From Auanema rhodensis (lineage: Eukaryota; Animalia; Nematoda): a DNA stretch of 64,000 nt. Where the stretch lies: assembly GCA_964057225.1 (NCBI GenBank), contig OZ059895.1, positions 7,936,001 to 8,000,000 of the forward strand, written 5' to 3'. The notes under the pieces were generated by a model. The model was given only the letters and a program-made list of their open reading frames with translations, had not been told where the DNA came from and ran no database searches. Position 1 is the first letter of the stretch, and every line of letters begins with the position of its first letter. Shown in pieces: positions 17,378-39,797 of the stretch. Made by a program: the position numbers and the translations under genes.

Positions 17378-20300
17378 TTACGTGAAGTTTGTCATGTTAG
17401 GAGTACTTCGAGCTACGCTGCTGAAACGAAATGCTCGAACTACATTCCGTAATCGGCGTCGTGCAGCAGCAGCTCCTTGCCGAGCTGCTGATCTCAAAAA
17501 TTCTCTCTCACGTGATGGAGATCTGCCAGAAGATCCTGAAACATGATATGTAAGTCGGAATATTTTTTTGCATATAGACATACGTGAAAAAGTCTTGGTT
17601 ACTGAAGGAGTTCCTAAACTATCTTTCGTGGAAGCCGACGCGCTTGTTGTTGATGATGTTACAGCAGGTGCACTGACTTTGTCTGTTACTTGGCTAATAG
17701 AGCTATCTTCGGTTTCTAAATCATACAAAAATTGATGATTATTATATAAGTGAAATACTTACCAACAGAATCTTCATTAGGGAAGAATCGTTGAGATCGG
17801 GGAGATCGTAATGAAAATGGCCACGAACCACTACGTTGAGAACATGCTTTTGCTTAAAAGTTTGAATTTTAGGAGTAAAACAAGATTTTGTTGAATGAAA
17901 TTTTTTTGAATTCTCTTTCATCAAATTATAAAATAAATAATTATTTTAATTTTTAAAAACAAACTTTTTCCATTTATGTGACTTGAATTCTGCTCTACTG
18001 GTGCATCTTCTTCTACAGTTGCTGGGAATGGTGAAGATAGGGGAGGTTCTCCTCTAAAATATTCAATATAGTAAATAATTTTGAATTCAAAAAATTGAAA
18101 ATAAATGAAAGAAAAGCTTACCCTTCCGTTCGTGCAAGATTATCAAGAACACGATCTAAACGACTGGGTTCTGTTTCACGTAACTTATTATATATTTTAC
18201 ATTGAAGATCTTTTGGAATCTAAATAAATAAATTTATATTATTATATTAGTTAACTATATGTATATAATATACCTTGAATATTTCTTCAACATGAGTAAT
18301 CATTGTTTCCATTACCGTAACCTGAGACTCATTTTCTGCTAAGCTTAATTGAAGTTTATCATGATCTGCTCTAAGAATACATGGGGCAAAGATTGTTGCT
18401 AAATTCTTGGCATCCATTTTATTTCCTTGAATTGTCTATAATTATAAATTAAATTATTAAATTATGCTGTTTATATGAATTACTTCTTCATCAACTTCTG
18501 AATCACATGAATGTAATGCAACTTCATGAAGAAATTTCAACAGAACAAACAAGGTATCAACTGATGTTGCATCCATTAATGCAATAAGTAATCGAACACA
18601 TTCTATCCGTTCTTCTAATGTTAATCCTATAGTGTAAGTTTTAGTAATTCAAGAATACGCTGACAAAGCTTACGTGAACAGGCTAGATATGCTTGATAAT
18701 GCTCATTCGGAAGGAGGGATTGCGGTAAATCTCGAAAATATTCTTTTAACAGAGTTGCAACATCATGAGTAGTTGTATTTTCCACCATATCATCACTAAT
18801 TGCTTGTCCGCCACCAACCTGAAAATCCTTTTTGAATGTTAATTGACAAATAAAATACTATTTTCAATTTTTATATTCATATATTTAGCATAAATTAGTT
18901 TAACGTTTAATGAATTAAAATGTTTTCTTACTTTTTCTAATGCACTACGTAGTTGACGACATCGTTTCTGATTACCAGCAATCCGAAAAAGACCCACTGA
19001 GGTTAGTCCTTTAAATACATTATTTTGTTTAAAATTGTAAAAAAATTAAATATACCGTATGCCATTAGATATTGAGTACAATTTTCAACAATTCGAGGTA
19101 CACGTATGGAATGTGGATCTACATCATCTACATTACCATCTAGCGAATAGGACAATGAAGCTGATGATGGGCGATGTTTCTTCATGAAACGGCCATTTTG
19201 AATTGAATTGGATGTTTGATGATAAGTCGGAGAAGCCTACAAGCAAATGATTAAGTTTTCAATAATATAATCTTTGTATACTTCAGCTAGAAGATGTTGT
19301 GATGTAGATGCATATGGATTCTGAATTGATAACGTTGAAATTGGAGGTAGAGAGCATGTTGGAGGTGCTGATCCAACCAAAGGAGAAGGAGATGATGGAT
19401 TAGTTGATGGATACAAATCCTATAACACGAACGTATGTTTCAACATAAAGACAAGAACAGTGAGATCAAAAAGACTTATAATCTTTTTTCTAAATTGAAT
19501 ACTTATGATCTTGATCTGATAAATAGAAAAAAAAGATTATTTAGCGTATGTATTTCATCTTGTTGGTTTTTTGAATATTTATATTTGATTTTTGGTTGCA
19601 ATCAGGCTTTAAAGATTTCAGATTAAGATTATTCTATTTAAACTTTTTTTTTTGAATTATATTCAAAACGAAATAATAAAGATTACAAATTATTCTTTTA
19701 GATTAAACAATGATATGAACATGTGATATGTATGTATGCACCTGAGTTGATGGATAAAGCCAACGACGACTATGATCAATAACATTGATGAATTCAGGCT
19801 CCGAACGAACAACTGATTTTGGGCCAGCAGATGATGGTGTTCGAGGACTATAATATTATTCATATAATAATATAAAATATATATTAATTATATATATATA
19901 GTTATATGAAACGAATATACCTTCGTGGTACAGCTAGAGATACAGTTGAATCATCCAATGATCGACACCGGCTTTCTAAATCTAATCGTCGCTCATTTTG
20001 CATGCAATCAATCAATGAAACACCAAATAAACGTTTTTCTTCTGAAAATATAAAATATTTTTTTATTTTATTAAATTAAGAAAAACCTCCATCTGTGCTA
20101 GAGCCACTTGGTCGTCGACTTACATCACCAACAGTTAATGTTCGACTAGTTTTGATTAATTTTTGTCGTTTTTGTCGTAAAACAGATAATGGATCTGAAT
20201 AAAATAATAAAATACAGAATAGATTAACATATATATATATTATAAATTATATATATATATATATATATATAGTTAATGAATAATACCTTTTGATTTGCTT

Positions 20301-21053: not shown

Positions 21054-23478
21054 TATGATACTGAAAAACGATAAAATAAATGTACCAAAAGATAGATATG
21101 AAGATGTAATGAGAAAGAAAAGAAAAAAAACAATATAAATTATTATAATTTTTAGCTTTTAGAAAAATCTCGAATACCAATTGGCGGCGTCGTCGTCGTT
21201 TCGAAGACTGTAATGAAGTTCGTCGATATTTGATGACAAAGATAGCCCAATCCATTGATGATAACAGTATTACTGATAACAAAATTTCAACAACAAAAAA
21301 ATAAATAAAAAGAATTTTGTATTTGAAAACGAATAAAGAAGAAATAGAAAATGAAAAAGACGAAGAAGATGATGTAGACGATGAAGATGAAGAAGATGAG
21401 AAAGAAAGAAGAAGTAGGAAGAATAATCGAGGAATTGACAATAACTAGCAAATGAATATGAAAAGAAAAGAATATATATTAAAAATAAGAGAATTAGAGA
21501 ATAAAAAAACTGAATATTAACAAGAATTTTTGTTGTCAAATAAGGAGACATGAATATGCAATCGATGCAGTTTGAGATGATTTTTTTTTGGCTTCTTACA
21601 ATTTGGAAATAAGACGAGATTAGACGAGACAAAATTAAAAGTTTGGATATTAAAATCACTTCAATTAGAAATTATTTTTTTTTATTTTTTAGAATAGAAT
21701 ATAAGGTATATTACATATTGATTTTTAGCTTTTCTTTCTAATGAAAAGACAATTATACATATATCGTTGGAACACATACACAACCCTCCCAAACCAACAC
21801 TATTCCCTCTCTTTCCTTCTCCTCCTCCTCCTCCCCCTCCTCTTCACATTGTCCTCCTCTTATTCCTTTTCCCACCCCGAAGATAAATGACAACAGACAG
21901 GGAGGGAGACAGGCAGAGCAGAAGGCTGGGTTCGAAATAAAAAAGGATTTTTGCTCAATTTTAACGAAATCTGTCATGTTTCTCAATCAAATGAAATTGA
22001 GTTTTAATGGAAGAGGCAAAAAGCGAATATAAGAATGGATTTTGAATTGAAAAATCGGCCAAACCAAAGATTTCCAAGCTGAATCTGTTGATGATGAAGT
22101 GCTACTGTTATGACTGAAGCCACCAATATATCTGGGTCGAAGTTTCCATAGAATCTTCTGCGATGAGTATTTCCATCCATCCGACTGACTACTGTAACTG
22201 GAGCATTGTCAAGAAAGGTTGTACGAATGTATATTGAATTTCAGCTTTAGGTTATAAGGCACCATTCTGACTCACCTGCTAGCCGATAGCGGCACTGATG
22301 GCGACACGGGAGCCGTCATGGCCTGTGGCAACATGTCATCGAGCTGATCGTGTGACCCATCGAAACCAGACGAATCACGTGAGTCACGTAGATGACCCTA
22401 AAATTAGAAATAGTATATGGTTATAAAAAATAAAATTAATAATAAAAATACATTAATATTATATAAATTATTGTTTTCATTATATTTAAGTACTTCATTT
22501 TATTCCCCAGATAAAATATTTAATAAATGTTTTTTTTTAATATTTTAAATACAAAAAATATTAAAAAAAAAACTTTTTAAATATCAATAATAAAATTAAT
22601 TCATCACATGTATATTATACTCAAAAGATTAATTGATTATTAGAATTAAAACAAAATTTATTAACTGAGGGTAAGAGAGTTAGTAAAGATGATAGAAAGA
22701 TGATAGAAAAGGAGAAAAAAAATGAAAAAGAGAGAGATAGAGAGAGTTAGAGAAAATGAGTATGCATGTATGTATATGTGTATAGTCAAAGCAATTGAGA
22801 GAAACAACTATTATTCTATTGTTTTACATAAGGAAGTTGATTACAGGCTTCATGCCACAAGACCAGCTTTAAATATATTTTTTTACTCAAAAAATTGTGG
22901 CTCTGGGATTCAAGGTATATGAATTTATTTTTTTTAGTTTTTATGATTAATATTCAAGTTTATAAATCAAACTTTCGTCAATTAAAATGCAAAAATCAAC
23001 ATTTTTTGTTTAAATTTAATGAAAATTGACCACAAAAAACTATAATATGATTAGAGAAATGAATCAATTTGTAACATCTCAACAGTCCTGATTAGCTTTA
23101 ATGTAATTATCTTTGTTAATTTTTTTTAAAAGCACAATTTTCACATATTTAAACAACATTTGATTCAAATTCGAAATGAGAAAAGTAGATTTTGAAGGTT
23201 CTAGTGAGATGAGTTCAATGCTTTCAATCAAGCTTTGCAACCTAAAATTTGGAAGTGAATTACTATTTTCGAGAAAAAAAAATATTTGAAGTGAATCAAA
23301 TGTCAAGGAATAGCTTTTCAATATATTATCATGAATACAAACTCAATTCATACTTTCTATAAACTACTAAACAACTTCGGAATATTTTCAAACAACGTTA
23401 AATAGAATCAAAAAGATTATAATCATTTTTATTTTTGGTTAATAAAAAAGTTTAAAAAAAAAATTTATGATGATTATT

Positions 23479-23516
<38 letters not shown>

Positions 23517-26500
23517 CACATAGTTAAAACGTATATATATATATATATAAAGTTAATCCGAAAGATCAAGCAATGTATTGTCAGACATACAAACATGAAT
23601 GTTCATGCATTTATCTATTCATATTCACAAATTATTTAAAAGTTTCGATTAAAATATAAATATTTAGAAAATATAAATCAAATTGTTGTAAATGCAGATG
23701 ATAAGAAACAGTACTATGTCTAACATATAACAGAAAACTTTTCAGATATATTGCTGAAAACTTGTTTTTTTTTGTGCTAAAAGCGGGAGACAAAAAATTT
23801 TTTAATAAACCATTTTGAGATTCTCATTCAAAATAAGCTGCCAAAATCAGATTTTTGTTATTGGAAGCGATATAAGAGCCTTTAATCTTCAGTAATCCCA
23901 AAAAATGGTCCATATCTTATAAGAAAGAGAGAGGTTGACAGAAGTAGAGAGTATAAGAGAAGCAGAGGAGACAAACGATAGATTGAAAAAGAGAATGAAT
24001 AAGATTGAGGACAAACTAGGGCAAAAAGTCAAAAAAAATTGATGAAGAAAGAGAGGTTAGAGAGACAGAGACATATTAGAAAAGTAAAAAAAATGATCTT
24101 AGCACGAAAAGCTGAAGAGAGAGAGAGGGAAAGAGATAGAGAATGGGAGAATCAACTCAAGACATGAGTGAGGAGATGAAGATGAAGGGAAGAACATGAT
24201 ATAGTTCATTGAATTGAAGTAATTTGAAACATTATCAAATTTTAAAAAAATTCATAGAGAAACAAGATTTTTTCTGATAATTCAACTGTTGTTATAGTGA
24301 AATCATCAAAATATTCTTCTTCGAAGAGAAAAAAAAGCTGCTGATATATCATTTTTTTAAAAACAAAGTAACATATAGAAGTGATAGATGATGATGCTTC
24401 TAACGCTAATGACGATGATGGAACATGAGAAATATGTGAATTAACCAGGAACATTGTCAGTATATATGATGGAATGGTAGGCATAGACTCCGGAAAGATA
24501 GTCCGGACTGAATGAACGGAAGAACTTTTCCGTTTTTTCCCCTCCTACAGATCATTTTAGGCTTAAAAGCTGATGTCATGTGCCGTTCATTGAATTCACA
24601 TCAAAAAAAGGAAATATGGAATATTCAAAATTGGATCATACTTCCTCTGTTAGCTTTGTCTAATACTCAAGTTGACTCTTCTGTTTTTCAGATAAAAAAA
24701 AATATGATATATAGTATATAGTTAAGCAATTAGAATATATTATATATAATTGAAGAATAATTTAAAATGATGAAGAATGGAATGATGTCGAATGGTTAAC
24801 TTTCAAACTGATTGTCTTAGATAACCTTGCTAACTATGCTATTCACATGAAGTAGTGAGAAAAGCATTGAAAGAGAAGCTAAAAAGGATTTGAAAGTGGA
24901 AATTACACTACGAAAGGGCTGGTAAGCCTAATGGTTGAAGCTAGATGTAGAAAGACAAGTAAATCTAATTAAAAGAAACCCAAAGACTAGATAGATTCTC
25001 TAACTCATAATAGGGCGGAACGGAGCAGAAGCTGAAAAAAACAAAAAGCCTTTCGAGGTCTACATATCTCTATCCATTTCAAACTGTCAGAATTCACTGA
25101 TTTTCTATTGTTGTTTATCAGTAACTATACATGTTTGTATATAGTTAGTTGTAGTTAACTTACTATCTTATTATGCGTTTTCACACTCAAGCTCATCAAT
25201 AAAATTTTTGAAATAACATATAGCACGTGTAGATTGAAGCATAGCTCCTTTAATGATCAGTATCTTATTGAAAAAAAAGACTAAATTAATTCTGAGCAAT
25301 TGAACTATCATACATTCTGTATTATACCATTTATTTTAATTATTTTTATAATTTTATATTATAATATATTGTAAATATTATATTAATTAATAATTAGATT
25401 ATAATAAAAAAAAATAATGATCGTCATTTTCTTTTTTTGATAAATTTCATCTTTCAATTTATCATTTTATATTATTTCAATTAATATAATATTTTTAATA
25501 TAAAGATTATTAAATATTACTAGTAATAATAATAAAGTGAACTTAAATTAACTATATATGTATATATAGTTAATTTATAATTTCTTTATAGTATAGTACA
25601 AATATTTCAAAAATTATTTACATGTACTTAATAGCAAAACTTAAGAATTAAACTAGAAATGTTTGAAAAAACAAGAAATACCTCTATATTTGACGACATC
25701 TCACCATGTCTTATGTATGTTTCTAGTAGATAAAATAGTTTAAAAACCAATTTATACTTTCAGTTTTCAACTTAAATTGTGGTAAATTATGATGAATAAT
25801 GTGAAAGAGAAGAACATAGAGATGAAGTAAAAAAAGAGAAATTTAAAAAGATTAAGAGTGAGAAAAGGTCGCCATAACATACAAGAGAGAGAGAGAGAAC
25901 GGGAGGGAGAGGCGGGAGTTCAAGAAGAGTAAAAGAGAGAAAGAGAGAGAAGCTGTTGATCAAGGGACAGAGATAGAATGAATGTCGAATGTCTCTAAAT
26001 TTCTTTAATAACGAGTAACCTGATACATGTACGTTTTTGGAGATGACTGATTTCATACCCTGAAGTAATGATCTGAAGTGGTATGAGGGGTGAACGGAAG
26101 CGACTAGAGAAGGAAGAAATGGAAAATTTTACATTTTTTTGCAAAAAAAAAAATTCGTTTTGATCGAACATTTATCAACAACAATAAAAGTAAATTTTCA
26201 TCACAATGATCTGCATTATTGTTGAATTGAGACATCAGACAACATGATAGAATAGCAAAAACTGATGTGCGATTTGTTGTCGTCGTTATCTGACATCTGA
26301 AGTGCAAAGTTGAATGATTTTGAACAATTTAGTCACTTATAATCCATCTGTTGACATGAATTTAAAGAAATGATAAAATATTTGAATTTGATATGATGAA
26401 AAGCATATATAAGGATTGTGAAGAAGAAGAAAAATTTGGAAAAAAACACAAATTGTAGTAAATGATATGATGATATACATAGTTATACATAAAATATATG

Positions 26501-27470: not shown

Positions 27471-27535
<65 letters not shown>

Positions 27536-29313
27536 CAACGGAGGAATCTAGAAATAGGTGAAAAGAGGTAAAGTTAAAGAGAGTAATGACTAGGATAGGC
27601 GGAGTCGATAGAATAAATGAAAGGATACTGAGAAATGAGAGGGAGATAGAGAAAACTTCAGTAGTTTCCCTCAAATCAACGTGTTCAAAAAACCTTCCAT
27701 CGTTCTCACTCCCCCCTTTACTCGATCCCCCCTATTATTCTCGGATTTCTTTTACCCTCTCTCTGACATTCATTTGCTTCTTTTGTTTTTTTTTCAATCA
27801 AAAAAAAAATCTTAAAGAACGTTGTTTTTTCTTAAATCTGAACTCAAAGGAAAAAAAGTGCAAAGATCTACTTGAAAATGAAAAAAAATTTAATAAGTAA
27901 TCATATTAATTGCTTTAATTGAAAAATCAAAAATATAAATTACATTTTTTCATTTATAATATATATTAATTGAAATATAAATATGATAATGCTATAAATT
28001 TCATATTTAAGATTCTTGAATAATCTTTTTTTGATTTTTTTTTCTTTAAAAATAACTTAAAACTTTAGTTTGTTAATCTTTTCTAAAACTTCTTTGTCGT
28101 ATTTGAACTCAACGTTTGAAGTATCTAAGAATGAAATATCAGATTGAATATCTCCATTTCTTTTAAAATATTCTCACGCTCAGAACCGTATATGACGTGT
28201 GTGATCTATTGAAAACTATGGCTGAAGCATACGTTCGGAAAAGGAGCAAAAGTGGTAGCAAGAAAGAAGGAATGGAAGGGAGGGCGCGAGGGAGGAAGAG
28301 AGAAAGAATTGCTGATGGTTTTGGACAGAGGCTAAGTTTTGAGAATTTTATATATATTATCTGAATCATCAGAAACATGACGTGATGATGTTTAGTTATC
28401 TGGAATATCCAAATAGCCTGATTCAAACTTCTATAACTTACGTTTGAGGAACAATAGAATTACTTAAATACGTAATCATAAATATATTATATTATATTAT
28501 TATATTTTGATAGAGATTAACGATATATCAACGTACGCTTTCAGTATCTGTCCATCGTCGTTGATTGCTTCTGATTGCTAGAAATTCCACGCTCACATCA
28601 TCTGATGCTGTTGTTGTTGGTCCTGTACCGGCAAGCCGTTCATTCATAACGATCTCATCACCGTCAATAGCCAATTGCATTGTAGTACCGTCGATAGATG
28701 GATGACGAACGGTAAGACGGGGTAGTTGTCTAGAAAATAAAGATTTCAGATTAAGAAACAATATAATATTATACTACTGTATAATAATAATAATAATAAT
28801 TATTATTATTATTATTATTATTATTCTAAAAATATAGTGAAAATAGTAAAAAGTGTCGGAAAAATATAATACTATAATATATATAAATATAATGAAATAT
28901 AAAGAAAATAACAACAAAAAATGATTGTTTTACAAAGACATTTTGAATTCGTATTTCTTCAAAACGATATGAAAATGCTAATTAAAAAATTAAATAGAAA
29001 TATCTGTTTATGAATATTTTAATATTTTAAATGGAATTTCACCACAACACGTGGGTTGATATACATACTACATTTATATATATTTTTTGGAGAAAAAAAG
29101 AGAAGAAAAACGAAGAAAGAGCGACGACCACATGAATAATAGAAGTTCAACATGCTGTTCATCTATGTTGAACAGAAGTAAACTCGTGTATGTATTTGCA
29201 TATATGTATGTTCATGTGGATGACGTGAAAAACGTGAACAATTTTAAAAAATAATTTAAATTTTCACACGAATCGGTTGCTTTTATATTTAAGAGAGAAA
29301 ATGAGAATAAGAT

Positions 29314-29344
<31 letters not shown>

Positions 29345-29452
29345 GAGAGATAAAATAAGGGAAATAATGATAGAGAGATACAGAATAGAGTGAAAGGTTG
29401 AGAGTAGGAAAGAGAGAAAGAGAGAGAGAGAGAAAGTCAAAGAGAGAGAGAT

Positions 29453-29515
<63 letters not shown>

Positions 29516-31872
29516 TAGAGAGAGAAAGAGAGAGAGAAACAATGAATGGAAAGAAACAGTAATTAATTACAAAACAAAACAAAAAACTAATACATATAAT
29601 TGATATTGTATACATAAATTTAGTATGTATATATGTATACTACACCATTTTTATTATATGTATAGTTATAACACATAGTATATGCATCTATCAATTTGAT
29701 TATATACATATAATATTATAAATAATAGTTTAAATAACTTATTTGTAATGAGATAGAAATAAGTTAAGAAGACGAATAGAGAGTAAAGCTTGCCAAATAT
29801 ATAAAATAAAAAAAATAATATATCTACCAGAAAGCTTATATTGATAAATAGAATATAAATATATTCAAATTGTACAGAATATAGTTAACATAAAGATTTA
29901 TTTTTTTTTTTTGAATTTAACTATATTTTCAAGCTCACACATACGAATGAGATAGATAGTCGGCGAACTAATTTTTTTTTGTTTACATTCCTGAAGATTA
30001 AACTCAAACATATATTGAATTTTGGTGACGAAAATGAATATAATTGGTTAAATGAAACATATTGAAATGCAGCATTTCTCTGCTAAATTAGCCTTTCGAC
30101 TTCTAAGTTTAAAGAATAAAATAGTATACAATACTTTTTATTTTTATTTTTTAACAGCTTCATATATAATCAAAAGATTTTTAAACAATTCCTTTGCCTT
30201 TTCATTCTTTTTTTAAACTTCTCTCTATCTCTTACTATCTTTCTATTCCTCTTCTTCTCTCTCTCTTTCTTTCTCTTCTTTTCCTCTTTCTCTTCCTTTC
30301 CCTTTCTCATTCTATCTAGATCTAGAAATTGTTCTCTCCTTTCTTCATGATAATTTTATAATAAAATAATATATGATACCATATGATAGAAAATTGAAAA
30401 TTAGTAATAAATTCAAATAAATTTTAATTTGAAAAATTTATGAAATAAAAATAAAACTAATGATGATGTGTAAAATAAAAATAAAATAAAAAAAAACGAG
30501 AAAAAAGCTAAGACATACAGACATATGAGAGATTTTATTTGAAAAAATTTGCTGCTCATGTATTTTTCATGGATAGTTTCAAAACAAACTTGAGTTTGGT
30601 AGAAACAAAATAGTTTTCAAAATATACAATATATGGAATTTTTGATTAAAAATTTACAAAACTTTGCAAGCTAAAGGATTTTCCAAGTCAAAGGATTTCA
30701 AAGCTAACGCATTATTCTATGCTACACCCTTATAACTCATACTGATTTCTTTAACAAACAAAAAATGTTTGGAAATGCTCATAAAGGGGTAAAGCTTCAT
30801 ATTTTCCAGTATTCAAAAAAAAACAAAAGAAAAATAATAATAATATACGAAAAAACCCAAATGAAATAGAAAATATAAACTAACTCAAAAATCATGACCG
30901 AAAAATTTCAGAAAAAAAAAAGTTGGCGATTAATGAGCTTGACGTCAAAATCATAATGTGTTACTGATCATAACGTGTAAATGAGATCAAAAAAACAAAT
31001 AAAATGAACAACAGGTATTGGTGCGAAGAGAACAAAGACATTTTAACAGAAAACTAAACACAACTTCAAAATTTGTGCACACGATTTTAAAATTTTAGAC
31101 TTGGCGAAGGATAGGCTGCGAAAAGTTTGAAATGAAATTTGAGCTGAAGCAGCAGGTACCCACGTAGACAGGAGGCATAACCTGAGCATACACGTTTTAA
31201 CCGAGTTCGTTAGCCCGATGTGTGGGCTCGTAAGGAAAAAAATGATAAATCTTTCATCTGGCTACATCACGCTCATAGCTCTGCATTCTCATCTTGCACT
31301 TGCCTCTTTCCCACCTACTCCATTCATCTCGGATTGCCTATCATAGCATGCTGTAGTTATAAGACTTGTGCAAAGCAAAATACATATATAAGAACTAAAG
31401 AAGAAGGAAAAAGAAAGATTTGTGATTGTTTTATTTATGAAAAATATATAATTCAATTGCATAAAATATGTTCTCTAGTAGTTTAGAGTTCTTTTTGAAA
31501 TACATGAATTTGATATATACTATCATGCACATGTAATTTGATTTGTGAAAGCTTGAGATGATGAATAACATCAGCAAGAATGAAGTTTTGAAAGATGAAT
31601 TACATTTTGGTACATAAGCATATACATACATATTTCGATGTTCTTATTTTGTGTTCTTACTTTGATGATATTTGGTTAAAAAAAACTTCCGTTTTTCGTA
31701 AGAAATTGTGGTATAAGAGCAGACAATATACATCATGGCAACAACATTAAATTTCAAATGTAATTGACACGACCTTTGAAGCTATTCCAGCTTATTATTG
31801 TCATGAAAATTTCATTTTTGATCACTTTAGACAGTTGAAATAAGATGAAAAGTAAGATAGATAGAGAGAGAG

Positions 31873-31941
<69 letters not shown>

Positions 31942-33052
31942 AGGAAAAGAAAAGCAAAGTAGATAGATAGACAGAAAGAAGAAAAATGCGTTATGGATAC
32001 TTAGTCATTGAGAGAAAGAGAAGAACATGAGAAGTCACAGATTCATTTTGATGGTTATGAAGATATAAAGAGATGCAAAAAGGAAGCAGATATAAGTGCT
32101 AGGAAAGCACAAAAAAGAAAATAGTGAGATAGAGAGGGAGAAACTGTGAGAGAGAGAGACTGAGAGAGAGAAAGAGATTGATTACAGTTAATGATTATTC
32201 AGTTTTTAAATTTTTTTAAAAATGAAAACAAAAAAAACTATGTTTGATCTAATGGATGAAACAAACAGAGTTTGCCTTCACTTCTTGTATTTAGTGAAAA
32301 AATTAAATTTTTCTTTCAAAGTGTTCTTAAAAAAGACTTTAAATGTAACATGTTGGGGAAATTGAATAGCGATGTTCGTAACCAAATTATTTTATTTTTC
32401 AATATAAAAAAAGTTCAATGCAGAACAAAGCATTGAAAGAATTCTTTTTCGTGAAAAATTTGAAAAGTAAATTCAAATTTTTTTTTTGATACAAACAGAG
32501 TTAGCAACTAGACATACATTCTTTTAATAGTTTTTGTCTTCAAATTAAATTTTTCTAAAACATGAAACATACATATATGGGTTTTAAGAATTGAGTTAAA
32601 GCATTAACTCTCGTATTCTTGTATTGTACCTGCTATAACGAGATTATTTCAAATTAGCATTGCGAATCATGCACGTGTAAAGTTCACGTGAAAATTCCAC
32701 GAGAATTATTCAATAATGCATGAGAGTACATATAGATCATTTTTTTTTAATAAAAATCAATTTATTTTATTTCTTTTATTTAATTTTTTTAATCTCCTTT
32801 TTACTTGAAAATTGGTTTTTTTTTTCGAAAAATGGGATAAAGATTATTTAATGTCTAGCTTTCATTTTCGATATCTTTATTAATGCAATTAATTATTTAT
32901 AAATGTGGCCAATAATTAATTTGGAAATAAGACTTTAAAAGCAAATGATTGGACATTCAGAAATTTGAAATAAAAAATGCAAATGTTATCCATACTCATT
33001 TTGTGAGCATTTATCCCTTCTCTCTCTTTCTCTCTTTCTCTATTTCGCTCCT

Positions 33053-33100
<48 letters not shown>

Positions 33101-36100
33101 ATTTCTCAGTATTCTTTCATTTATTCTATCGACTCCGCCTATCCTAGTCATTACTCTCTTTAACTTTACCTCTTTTCACCTATTTCTAGATTCCTCCGTT
33201 GCTCTATCTTTCACTTTCTCTCTCTCTCTCCCTCTCTCTCTATTCTTTATTTTATTTTTTTTCTCTCCAATTATTGAGATCAAGTTTGAGTAAAACCTAT
33301 TTGAAGGGCAAAAAATAGTTTTTTTTTATGAAAAAAAAAGAAATTAAAGAATAGGGTTTGATCGTTAGATGATGAATCTTAATTAGAAATTTAAAGGAAA
33401 AAGACTGAAAAAAAAAGATTTTTGAATCTCTAATGAATGTTATTGGTATGCATACATGTATTATATAGTATGACAGTTTGTTATTTATAGAAGAAATAAA
33501 TGAAAACATTTAGAAGAAAAATATCCGAAATAATACAGAAAATCATCGAAAAGCTTAATAGTCTCCAGTGAATAAAAAATTATCTGAAGTACGAAATTTA
33601 GGCAACAGAACTTTTATGTCGTTTCAAATTCTCTTTCCTTCTCTTTCTCTCTTTCTTCCTTTCTCTCTCTATATCTCTCTATCCTCCCTTCCTTCCCTCT
33701 GTATTTTTCTTCTGCTTGTCTGTTTCTCTCAATGTCTGATCGTTTATGTTCTCTTGTTCTTTTTTCATTTCTTGTCATTTCTTACTTTCAAACCTATTCT
33801 CTTTTCGTTTGAAAATTTTTATACTTTCCAATGTGGAAGTATGCATGTAGAGATGTGAAAAACAAAATTCTACTCACTACCAGACACTAGAACCTTCAGA
33901 ATATGGTCGTAAAACAACATTCATTTAAATCTTAATAAAGAAAATGAAACAAAAACATTTGTGATGATGGATGAAATATGTGAATGGATATTCAATAGAA
34001 AATATTATTATAACTGATTTTACTTAAAATTTTACTATATAGTTAATATAAAAAAGCATAATATATAAATATATATATACATAGTATATGTATGTCAATA
34101 TTCCATTTGAGTATACTTCTCTTTACTTTGAGCCTTTTTTTTTATGAAGAAGGAGGAAGCGAATTAAAAAACAAATGAATGTAAAAAAAATTATAAAAAT
34201 AATGCTATTAATGATTAAAATGAAGTCAGTCAAGTGTCGTATGTATGGATGTTGTTTGTCAGCTTTTCTATTGACTTTATATGGTTTTTATTGTGTTGAA
34301 AAGAGAAGACAAGAAATCAAAATCAAAATTTCATGATGAAGTAAAATAAATTTTCAAAAAAAAAAAAAAAACAGGGAAAGACGGATTGATGGATATACGA
34401 ATAGATGATAAAAGAGTTCAGAAGACGGTTACGAGACTAAAGAAGTAGATGACGACGAAAAAGAAGAAGAAGGAAAATATGCAAAACATCCTATGTGACT
34501 TCAGAAGAATACTGCAGAAGAATAAAGTTTAAATTTATCTTTGTGTGTGTGATAGAGAACAAAATTGGAAAGTGCAGTTATTTTGAGAGAAAATCGTATA
34601 AGTTAAAGATAACTGAAATATTTTATTTTTCTTGGGAAAAAAAGGAAACGCAGACTGTTTGAGTCGGCGAACAGTTAAGAGAGAGAGAGAGAGGGGGGGG
34701 GGCTGAAAATTACAAAAAAAAAGAGAAAAAATGAAAAAGACAGCAAGAAAGAGAAAAGGAGTAGATGAGGGAGTGTGGTTAGCCAAGCGAAGACTCATAG
34801 TCGTCTCAACTTGAATTCTCTTTACATGTAAAGCTTGAATGAACAGGAAACAATAAACTCAAAAGACAAGAGACAAGTCAACATTGAACGATTAGCTTAA
34901 AAGGCTATAGAGGGGCAAAAGTTAAAGTAGATGTTGATTGTATCATAAACTATATATGTTTTTAATATTACAAACTATATGTGTAGTTACTAAAGGTGAA
35001 TTAGAAATAAATTTACATTCTTGCTATGTCTCAGTCTTCTTTCTTCTACTTCAATCTCATCTCAACGTTTTATAATCATGTACATATATAGAAGTTATTG
35101 TTTGTGGTGGTTTAAGAAAAAAAAAAAGTTTTATCTCTAGATTATTCAATTTTCTTAGTTATTTTTATTAGAAAATTCTTAGAAAAAGAAGATATATTTG
35201 GATGGGAATGTATGTCTGTACCATCAAATAATCAGAGCAAATTAACTATTTTCTAAGAAATTAAAAGCATTTTCAGCAACAAATATGTCAATTTGTGTAC
35301 ATGTATCTTCTCCTTACTTTATGTGAAATATTTATGAACATATGTATGCATGTAAGCACATAGTTGTTTCTATCACAATCCTTCTCTCTGTCTGGCTTCG
35401 TATCCTGTGTGTCTGTGTGCGTATGTTTCAAAGTTTCTCTCATCATTTAGTTTTTTTTTTGTTTTTTTTTTAACTGTATCTTACTCTTCCTCTTTAGAAT
35501 TTAGTAATTTAGTTAATTTTATTTTTTTTTGGACCACCTAAGTTGTTAATAAAATCAATTTTTGTCATGAATTCAAGTGTATGAATTGTATGAAAATTAA
35601 GTAAAGTATGTGATTATGAGTCAATTAGTTAATATTAAAATATATATACATATATATATATACTATATACATATAATTTGATGTACAATTAGATGAAAAT
35701 AAAGGATAGATTGTTTTTTGATTTCAAATTAAGTATGTAGATGTTATAAAAGAATTAAAAGAACTAGAAATGATAATATAGTTAGTATAATGCTAGTAGT
35801 AATAGCTAGAGTAATAGCAGTATAGACGTACATGATAACATCGTCTATTGTGAGGTTGACATGGAGGAAAAAGTAATAGAATTCGTAGTCCAATACCAAT
35901 CCAGACATATAGAAAAATGGGAAAAACGTGAGGATGAAAAGAGAGGCAGAACCAGTGCTGAACGATAGATTTTGGAACAAATTAGCATAAGCATTATGTA
36001 AATCGTGAATTGGAGAAAACAGAAGTGAATACAATAGTGCCGATGGCAATAGATGATGACGACGATGTGAATGAAGTAGATGATTGGGGGAGTATGTAGC

Positions 36101-38403: not shown

Positions 38404-39797
38404 GAAACAAGGTAATATACTCTATTTTAGAAAAAAGAAGGTAATGTTGCAAATGCAAACATGTTCATGAACATTTCGGAGTATTTTCATGCACATACAT
38501 GCACTAAGAATAACTATGAGAAAAAAAAAGAGGAAATTATAGTTTTGTACTATGTTTTTGAGATAATACCATTTATATACAAGTACAGCATAAAAACTTT
38601 TAAATATTCCTGATATATGTATATAATGGATTTTAAATAATATTATTTAAAAAATGAAATTAAGATAAAAAACAAGAAAACAAAATAAGAAAATGAACGT
38701 GAAAAATACCTTAAATGTACTTCAATATTTATATTTTATATAATATTTGATTTGTTTTTATTCATAATTCTTTTAAAAACTCTTTTTTTCTTTATTTTAG
38801 AATAAAAAAAAACTAAACGGAAACAAATGATTGTATCATCAAGGCGTAAATTCGAATGAAAAGAAGATGCAGTTTAAAGAAATGGATGAGAAAATTCAAA
38901 GAAAAACAGTTGAAATATTGAAATGAATATGTTCAATTTGTATTGAAATTGCTCAACACAAAGGTTTTGAACATTTGATTTTTACAAGAAAAATAGAATT
39001 TTAAATAAATACGAGAGAAAATATAATATATGAAATAGAGAAGAGATTGATCTTTTATACTTGAATGTATAGTTAATATTAAAAGTTAGAAAGATGGTTG
39101 AATAATATATAAATTAATATTTAAATGAATAAAATTAAGAAATTATAATATATTAAATTATATTAAAACTCACAACTGCTTTGAATTTTTTGATGTTGAT
39201 CCCATAAATTTATGATATTTAAAAATTCTAAATTGACTTCGTCGAAATGATCTGAAAAGTTCATTTATTATTTAAATCAAACAAACTTCGTTTTAAAGTT
39301 TACGTGACATGTCTCACGTAAGCTAACTGACATCATTTTTATTTTTATTTTATTTAGAAATCGGTTGCATTCCATATAGCATTCAATATATTCATATAAT
39401 CAAGTTAGAAGATCAAAAGATGATTTTCTAATTACCTTGTAGCAAAATTAGCTAAACGTTTAGTGGTTGATATTGGATTAGTGAAGGTTGAAGTACTGGG
39501 TTCATCGGCTGTACCATTGCTGGAACCTGGAGCCGGAGATGTTGATCTGCTATCTGATCTATGTGATTTGTCATCAGAATCTGTAAATTTAGTCAGTAAA
39601 ATAGACAAAAATAATGTTTTGTTTTTCTGCAAAATAATTTTAATATTATGTATTTTCAATATAATAAATAAATAGAAATTATAGAAACTTTTTCGTTTAA
39701 CTGATCGGCGATTAAATAAGAGACGAGATATGCCACTGGATGAACGATCAGATTCTATAGAGGACTGCCTAGACATTCGCCGCGGAGATACAGACAT
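17378..39797 (-). CDS. Rho GTPase-activating protein, ARHGAP6/ARHGAP36-like, ~869 aa, 20 exons
   Basis: Exons 39797-39689, 39580-39436, 28729-28537, 22397-22276, 22197-22065, 20446-20287, 20194-20087, 20041-19921, 19847-19742, 19419-19282, 19236-19056, 19008-18932, 18818-18674, 18626-18484, 18435-18274, 18219-18122, 18053-17965, 17852-17763, 17715-17584, 17535-17378 (2610 nt, all in phase). RhoGAP motifs VPRIVENCTQYL, GLFRIAG (arginine finger), HDVATLLKEYFRDLP, GNKMDAKNLATIFAP. The LSDIERTALQ segment is ARHGAP6-like. Linkage of the three most 5' exons rests on phase compatibility. Confidence 0.88.
21178..21255 (-). CDS. Candidate internal alternative first exon of the RhoGAP (MDWAIFVIKYRRTSLQSSKRRRRRQL)
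   Basis: TTATCAG acceptor at 21273-21274, ATG at 21255, 26 codons, phase-0 donor TTG|GTATTC matching the phase-0 exon at 20446. Confidence 0.5.
27532..27636 (+). repeat. 105-bp inverted repeat, copy A (RhoGAP intron 3)
   Basis: AGAGCAACGGAGGAATCTAG...GATACTGAGAAAT is the reverse complement of 33101-33205 with one mismatch. Embedded in (GA)n. Confidence 0.95.
29311..29536 (+). repeat. Compound (GA)n microsatellite tract, representative of many
   Basis: Long interrupted GA run. Other (GA)n runs at about 6549-6600, 8776-8850, 15561-15604, 20980-21050, 27440-27534, 31864-31937, 38300-38405, 44788-44854, 62260-62346, 63025-63083. Confidence 0.9.
33101..33205 (-). repeat. 105-bp inverted repeat, copy B (RhoGAP intron 2)
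   Basis: ATTTCTCAGTATTCTTTC...CCTCCGTTGCTCT, the reverse complement of 27532-27636 (104/105). Embedded in (TC)n. Confidence 0.95.

Follow-up and report, generated by a model that had tools for sequence, protein, structure and literature searches.

The window analyzed here is a 64,000-nucleotide (nt) stretch of the genome of the nematode Auanema rhodensis (contig OZ059895.1, positions 7,936,001 to 8,000,000, forward strand), and positions below count from its first letter unless another sequence is named. It contains a minus-strand gene whose 3' exons encode a RhoGAP domain, assigned exon by exon to Pfam family PF00620, and two introns of this gene hold the arms of a nearly perfect inverted repeat that bracket one exon. 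A sequence-only reading of this locus had proposed that the arms pair in the pre-mRNA and loop out the exon, giving a circular RNA (circRNA) and/or a frameshifted mRNA prone to nonsense-mediated decay (NMD), so that the long RhoGAP isoforms would be silenced and an internally initiated one spared.

The RhoGAP gene and the bracketed exon

The gene model was obtained by tblastn of P0009, an 886-amino-acid (aa) full-length RhoGAP protein of Caenorhabditis auriculariae, against the window, with exons searched singly and P0009 as the full-length query. Positions 30125-30161 were masked as N in tblastn and in the RNA fold, and the Rfam scans covered the sequence on either side of them. One of the 3' exons matches PF00620 over the cut-off (2.3e-9), two others match it in part, and the full-length orthologues contain the same domain. 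When the N-terminal part of P0009 was used in a word search, it recovered orthologues from Caenorhabditis, strongylids, ascarids, Diploscapter, and Auanema sp. JU1783; those of C. elegans include NP_491465.2 and NP_491466.2. In order of transcription, the exons are the following.

39689..39797, minus strand: exon 1, 109 nt, with a putative start ATG at 39797; matched by blastn to the start of the JU1783 gene
39436..39580, minus strand: exon 2, 145 nt; from reading of the sequence, tblastn, and blastn to the JU1783 locus
39174..39251, minus strand: exon 3, 78 nt, peptide SFRRSQFRIFKYHKFMGS...; from tblastn with P0009 residues 80-98, with an AG acceptor and a GTGAGT donor
28537..28729, minus strand: exon 4, 193 nt, phase 2 to 0; aligns to P0009 residues 109-156
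22276..22397, minus strand: exon 5, 122 nt, peptide GHLRDSRDSSGF...; from reading of the sequence and tblastn
18247..18997, minus strand: RhoGAP-domain exons, from PF00620 exon by exon and tblastn with P0009

Exon 4 is the one enclosed by the repeat. Its splice sites on the minus strand are canonical (AG at 28731-28730, GT at 28536-28535), and with a 10.4-kb intron 3 on one side and a 6.1-kb intron 4 on the other, it stands alone in the 16.8 kb that separate exon 3 from exon 5. The exon 4 peptide matches no Pfam family; an exhaustive phmmer search found nine nematode protein matches for it, P0009 among them. Between the two arms, tblastn placed no further segment of P0009, and exon 4 is the only DNA block there that blastn finds conserved with the JU1783 locus. 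No known RNA family was detected in introns 3 and 4 at E <= 0.1 in Rfam.

The same exon layout is common to C. auriculariae, Trichostrongylus colubriformis, and Auanema sp. JU1783. In both C. auriculariae (139 nt) and JU1783 (169 nt), the exon 4 orthologue is a separate exon whose length is 3n+1, and in T. colubriformis it is likewise separate and is preceded by a 13.5-kb intron. On this comparative evidence, exon 4 is a real, conserved exon and the sole coding exon between the arms. The single bracketed 193-nt exon of the sequence-only reading is thus borne out by its splice sites, by orthologues, and by tblastn. The A. rhodensis exon is 24 nt longer than that of JU1783 (193 versus 169 nt) because it has extra residues in a poorly conserved middle part, and the ends of its peptide are strongly conserved across nematodes.

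Two details of the earlier gene model have to be corrected, both because it missed the 78-nt exon 3 at 39174-39251, a segment found in all full-length nematode orthologues. The arms had been assigned to introns 2 and 3 and lie in introns 3 and 4; the junction expected from skipping of exon 4 had been given as 39436 to 22397 and should be 39174 to 22397, with 39174 as the donor. The predicted consequence of skipping survives this correction. When 39174 is joined to 22397 the frame shifts, and exon 5, read one base later in the +1 frame, meets a premature stop after 26 codons.

The inverted repeat

Direct comparison of 27532-27636 on the plus strand with the reverse complement of 33101-33205 gives agreement at 104 of 105 nt, as had been claimed. 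The sole mismatch lies at 27624 (G) and 33113 (T), both on the plus strand, and in the minus-strand pre-mRNA it places A opposite C, again in line with the earlier description. With its flanks, the arm pair grows in a repeat search to 27496-27652 and 33085-33241, that is, 157 nt at 95% identity. The parts of the repeat are as follows.

33101..33205, minus strand: upstream arm of the transcript, which as RNA is rich in purines; located in intron 3, with 4.4 kb between it and the acceptor of exon 4
27532..27636, minus strand: downstream arm of the transcript, which as RNA is rich in pyrimidines; located in intron 4, with 0.9 kb between the donor of exon 4 and the arm
33206..33241, minus strand: flank on the outer side of the upstream arm, pairing with 27496-27531; from the 157-nt repeat and the minimum free energy (MFE) fold
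27496..27531, minus strand: outer microsatellite flank of the downstream arm, pairing with 33206-33241; from the 157-nt repeat and the MFE fold
33008..33100, minus strand: inner tract of the upstream arm, (TC)n on the plus strand and (GA)n in the pre-mRNA, promiscuous in its pairing; from the inverted-repeat list (I2-I25) and the MFE fold

A 109-mer of the repeat occurs in exactly two places across the 181-Mb genome, which disposes of the suspicion that the arms might belong to a high-copy element. The arm pair is also the only non-self match in a dust-filtered self-BLAST of the window. The window and the adjacent 200 kb served as background for repeat frequency: sensitive BLAST found no diverged third copy of the 101-nt core in them, and the adjacent 200 kb contain no complex inverted pairs. 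Because there are two genomic copies, no other non-self match, and no third copy, the inverted repeat is real and far beyond chance.

Other repetitive features of the region were also recorded. The adjacent 200 kb contain a perfect 242-bp direct repeat whose copies are 3.1 kb apart (C3:8053715-8053956, 8057088-8057329); it is without microsatellite flanks and a weaker 74-nt match adjoins it, and it may represent a small element's terminal repeats or else a further local duplication of recent date. The plus strand of the window (1-64000) is 55% purine overall, with many (GA)n blocks at 85-90% purine, and the RhoGAP pre-mRNA is therefore rich in (UC)n tracts. Oppositely oriented blocks at 27650-27800, 30200-30350, 33010-33250, and 33650-33800 give rise to many imperfect complementary intronic pairs of 80-90 nt.

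Predicted pairing in the pre-mRNA

The core arms are predicted to form a 104-bp duplex at -185 kcal/mol, whereas the single arms, folded by themselves, reach no more than -6 and -2 kcal/mol. An MFE fold of the whole 5.95-kb pre-mRNA segment leaves 104 of the 105 arm positions paired arm to arm, so that the core arms are predicted to choose each other over other partners. The suggestion that flanking (GA)n and (TC)n runs extend the duplex holds in this fold for the outer side, where the flanks lengthen the predicted helix by about 33 bp, and fails for the inner side. There, the (GA)n tract at 33008-33100 pairs with (UC)n at approximately 31800-32000, about 1.1 kb away within intron 3 and not across the exon, and three other tracts could also serve as its partners, at predicted energies of -129 to -142 kcal/mol.

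Conservation, age, and origin of the repeat

JU1783 provides by far the closest orthologue in the N-terminal region. Its exons are 74-88% identical in DNA to those of the window, so that it represents a related species and not the same one. The repeat core is absent from the orthologous locus of this closest available relative, and no complex complementary match surrounds exon 4 in JU1783, where the search returned only a 19-nt borderline hit and microsatellite tracts. The orthologous introns of C. auriculariae likewise hold no comparable pair, only T-rich/purine-rich low-complexity matches of 15-16 nt.

One candidate for a conserved match was considered in T. colubriformis, where an element resembling a miniature inverted-repeat transposable element (MITE) occurs on both sides of the exon 4 orthologue, at a distance of 2.7 kb upstream and 2.8 kb downstream (L024 21824-22173, 27811-28262). 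We rejected it, since both members of the pair are copies of one dispersed, self-palindromic element of unrelated sequence; the locus is repeat-rich, and for that reason the exon-flanking arrangement is probably chance. The RhoGAP gene of C. auriculariae has an inverted repeat of its own (175 nt, 98.9%, with a 236-nt loop; L023 18893-19067, 19304-19478), which is contained entirely in the intron that splits the coding sequence between residues 446 and 447 and so brackets no exon.

One difference in 105 positions implies, from the sequence, either a recent event or ongoing conversion. With an assumed mutation rate like that of C. elegans, approximately 2-3e-9 per site per generation, the point estimate for the age of the repeat would be on the order of a million generations; as a single substitution underlies it, its error is very wide. 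Homology at both sides of the repeat stops within GA-type (GA)n/(TC)n microsatellites. Since both junctions thus lie inside microsatellites, we infer that the second copy would have arisen by a template switch during repair or replication, or by gene conversion, between oppositely oriented microsatellite tracts. Strand polarity gives no signal as to which arm is the original and which the copy, as other TC-rich patches exist. The segment between the arms shows no sign of having been inverted: exon 4 shares its strand with the other exons, and the polarity of GA-rich blocks is the same inside the loop and beyond it.

Comparison with known systems

The closest parallel is found in C. elegans, where reverse-complementary matches (RCMs) in introns promote circularization of exons in glr-2, gpa-1, unc-75, arl-13, iglr-3, Y20F4.4, and zip-2 (PMC8330042). 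Deleting one intronic RCM abolished the circRNA in six genes, and RCM deletion also lowered the skipped mRNA in zip-2, Y20F4.4, and arl-13 (PMC8330042). These deletion data support the earlier statement that such matches promote back-splicing in C. elegans, and because circle and skip were both affected, they match the dual outcome proposed for exon 4. Exon 4 resembles the C. elegans RCM exons in having complementary sequences in both flanking introns, canonical splice sites, and introns that are longer than average (PMC8330042). Compared with the C. elegans RCMs, the RhoGAP match is much longer, nearly perfect, and strictly two-copy. The C. elegans cases rest on RNA data and CRISPR deletions, whereas the RhoGAP pair is known from sequence alone. 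A further difference concerns conservation: the 13-nt RCM of zip-2 is conserved in five species, whereas the RhoGAP pair is absent from the closest relative, and conserved splicing-regulatory pairing of the zip-2 kind does not appear at the orthologous introns examined.

Flanking-intron inverted repeats also bring back-splice sites together in the circularization driven by mammalian Alu pairs and in the mouse Sry circle (reviewed in PMC8330042), and the RhoGAP arrangement is similar in this respect. Alu pairs are high-copy sequences with many competing partners, whereas the RhoGAP core has exactly one partner genome-wide.

A second comparison is with the editing-enriched regions of C. elegans. 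As described in PMC4408787, PMC5859968, and PMC6239182, these are intramolecular duplexes formed by inverted repeats in protein-coding introns, as the RhoGAP duplex would be, and adenosine deaminases acting on RNA (ADARs) shield such intronic double-stranded RNA (dsRNA) from RNA interference (RNAi). As presented there, what defines the regions is clustered A-to-I editing in RNA-seq, and such self-complementary sequence is traced largely to transposon-derived repeats. The RhoGAP arms, by contrast, are unique sequence, lie 5.4 kb apart with an exon between them, and have been recognized in the genome sequence only.

Interpretation

On our preferred reading, the locus carries a young, lineage-specific inverted duplication of a purine-rich sequence of approximately 105-160 bp, which probably causes back-splicing and skipping of the constitutive exon 4 at a low level as a by-product; we put the probability of this reading at about one half. 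All of the structural preconditions examined hold, namely arms in the flanking introns, a real exon, a frameshift, and a stable predicted duplex. In the pre-mRNA, the arms would form a duplex of about 137 bp and bring the acceptor and donor of exon 4 together. This would allow some back-splicing to a 193-nt circle, by the mechanism of the reverse-complementary matches, and some skipping, which would give the frameshifted mRNA with its premature stop. Circles, skipping, editing, and regulation at this locus are all predictions, and the first two are likely to be low-level by-products of a young mutation and not an evolved switch. The loop-out interpretation of the sequence-only reading therefore stands as far as its structural preconditions go, whereas the evolved switch is weakened by the roughly 99% identity of the arms and by the absence of the repeat from JU1783.

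Several points weigh against our reading. With 4.4 kb between it and the acceptor, the upstream arm could be lost through splicing of intron 3 before transcription has reached the downstream arm, and the (GA)n/(UC)n pairing predicted inside the introns may compete with pairing of the arms. With regard to origin, the proposed template switch is deduced from the junctions alone, and the sequences compared include no outgroup that carries either copy, so that the original arm is not identifiable. Apart from these points, coordinate arithmetic indicates that a random pair with the same spacing placed in introns 3 and 4 brackets exon 4 in about 47% of positions. For this reason, the bracketing position alone is weak evidence of function.

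We also entertain, tentatively, a stronger form of the proposal, in which a circRNA locus has been caught at its birth and a duplication diverged by no more than about 1%, produced by template switching between microsatellites, already diverts a measurable part of the RhoGAP pre-mRNA to the 193-nt circle and to a frameshifted, skipped mRNA targeted by NMD.

It is possible, although we think it rather unlikely, that the repeat is inert in RNA, either because intron 3 is spliced first or because proteins or microsatellite pairing keep the arms apart, in which case circle, skipped mRNA, and editing would all be missing. The youth of the repeat and its lack of conservation are consistent with inertness, as are the bracketing expected from geometry, the distance of the arms from the splice sites (4.4 kb and 0.9 kb), and the nearby alternative microsatellite partners with their energies of -129 to -142 kcal/mol. 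However, the core duplex of 104 bp is predicted to be without a competitor at -185 kcal/mol, and in C. elegans a match can be effective in vivo at a length of only 13 nt (PMC8330042).

An improbable alternative is that the duplex is mainly a long intronic dsRNA, edited by ADAR and/or processed by RNAi, with little effect on the splicing of exon 4. A predicted perfect duplex of more than 100 bp would be a suitable substrate, and edited dsRNA in C. elegans comes mainly from intronic inverted repeats (PMC4408787, PMC5859968, and PMC6239182). The genome also encodes a gene with an A_deamin domain (PF02137), at one locus on contig C7. This domain is common to ADAT1, however, so the match could be the tRNA enzyme ADAT1 and not ADAR. 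Moreover, the 5.4-kb loop includes a spliced exon, and the duplex is consequently confined to unspliced RNA.

The regulated switch, in which looping out of exon 4 yields both a circRNA and an NMD-targeted skipped mRNA while an internally initiated isoform is spared, seems to us more doubtful again. Its structural preconditions are present and its mechanism is established in C. elegans (PMC8330042). Several orthologue gene models begin just before exon 5, which makes an internal start conceivable from sequence, and intron 4 contains a conserved noncoding block 1.4 kb upstream of exon 5. Yet the arm identity of about 99% points to a very recent origin, the nearest available relative lacks the repeat, and three other nematodes show no conserved match of a comparable kind. 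A strong frameshift in a gene conserved across nematodes is more likely to be harmful, and the short orthologue models are perhaps just predictions truncated across a long intron.

These models (P0021, P0022, P0024, P0025, P0027, and P0028, from Haemonchus, Ancylostoma, Dictyocaulus, Diploscapter, C. remanei, and C. japonica) start with a few unrelated residues followed by the exon 5 peptide (G)RLRDSR..., and represent either truncated predictions or a real internally initiated isoform. The block in intron 4, at 23800-23866 (L025 17759-17825), is about 68 nt long and 87% identical to JU1783, while other intron sequence does not align; it is AT-rich, looks noncoding, and might have a regulatory role or belong to an internal promoter.

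It is very unlikely that the second copy is an assembly artifact, since the arms are short, 5.4 kb apart, and different at one base and in their flanks, unlike the spacerless fold-back of read artifacts, or that the arms are terminal inverted repeats of a mobile element, which would hardly have two genomic copies only, ends that fade into microsatellite with no sharp termini, and a conserved host exon with no long open reading frame as its interior; a DNA transposon or MITE was rejected on these same features.

The RhoGAP repeat is a well-defined candidate case of a mechanism that is already established, and it does not represent a system of a new kind. If back-splicing or skipping does occur, it would offer an unusually clean natural case of a recent, nearly perfect match with a single partner around one exon, with a relative that lacks the repeat. 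It could show the speed at which a new intronic inverted duplication alters splicing, and whether duplications mediated by microsatellites seed new circRNAs in nematodes. If the locus has indeed been caught at birth, A. rhodensis and its repeat-less sister species would form a natural before-and-after pair for the evolution of back-splicing.

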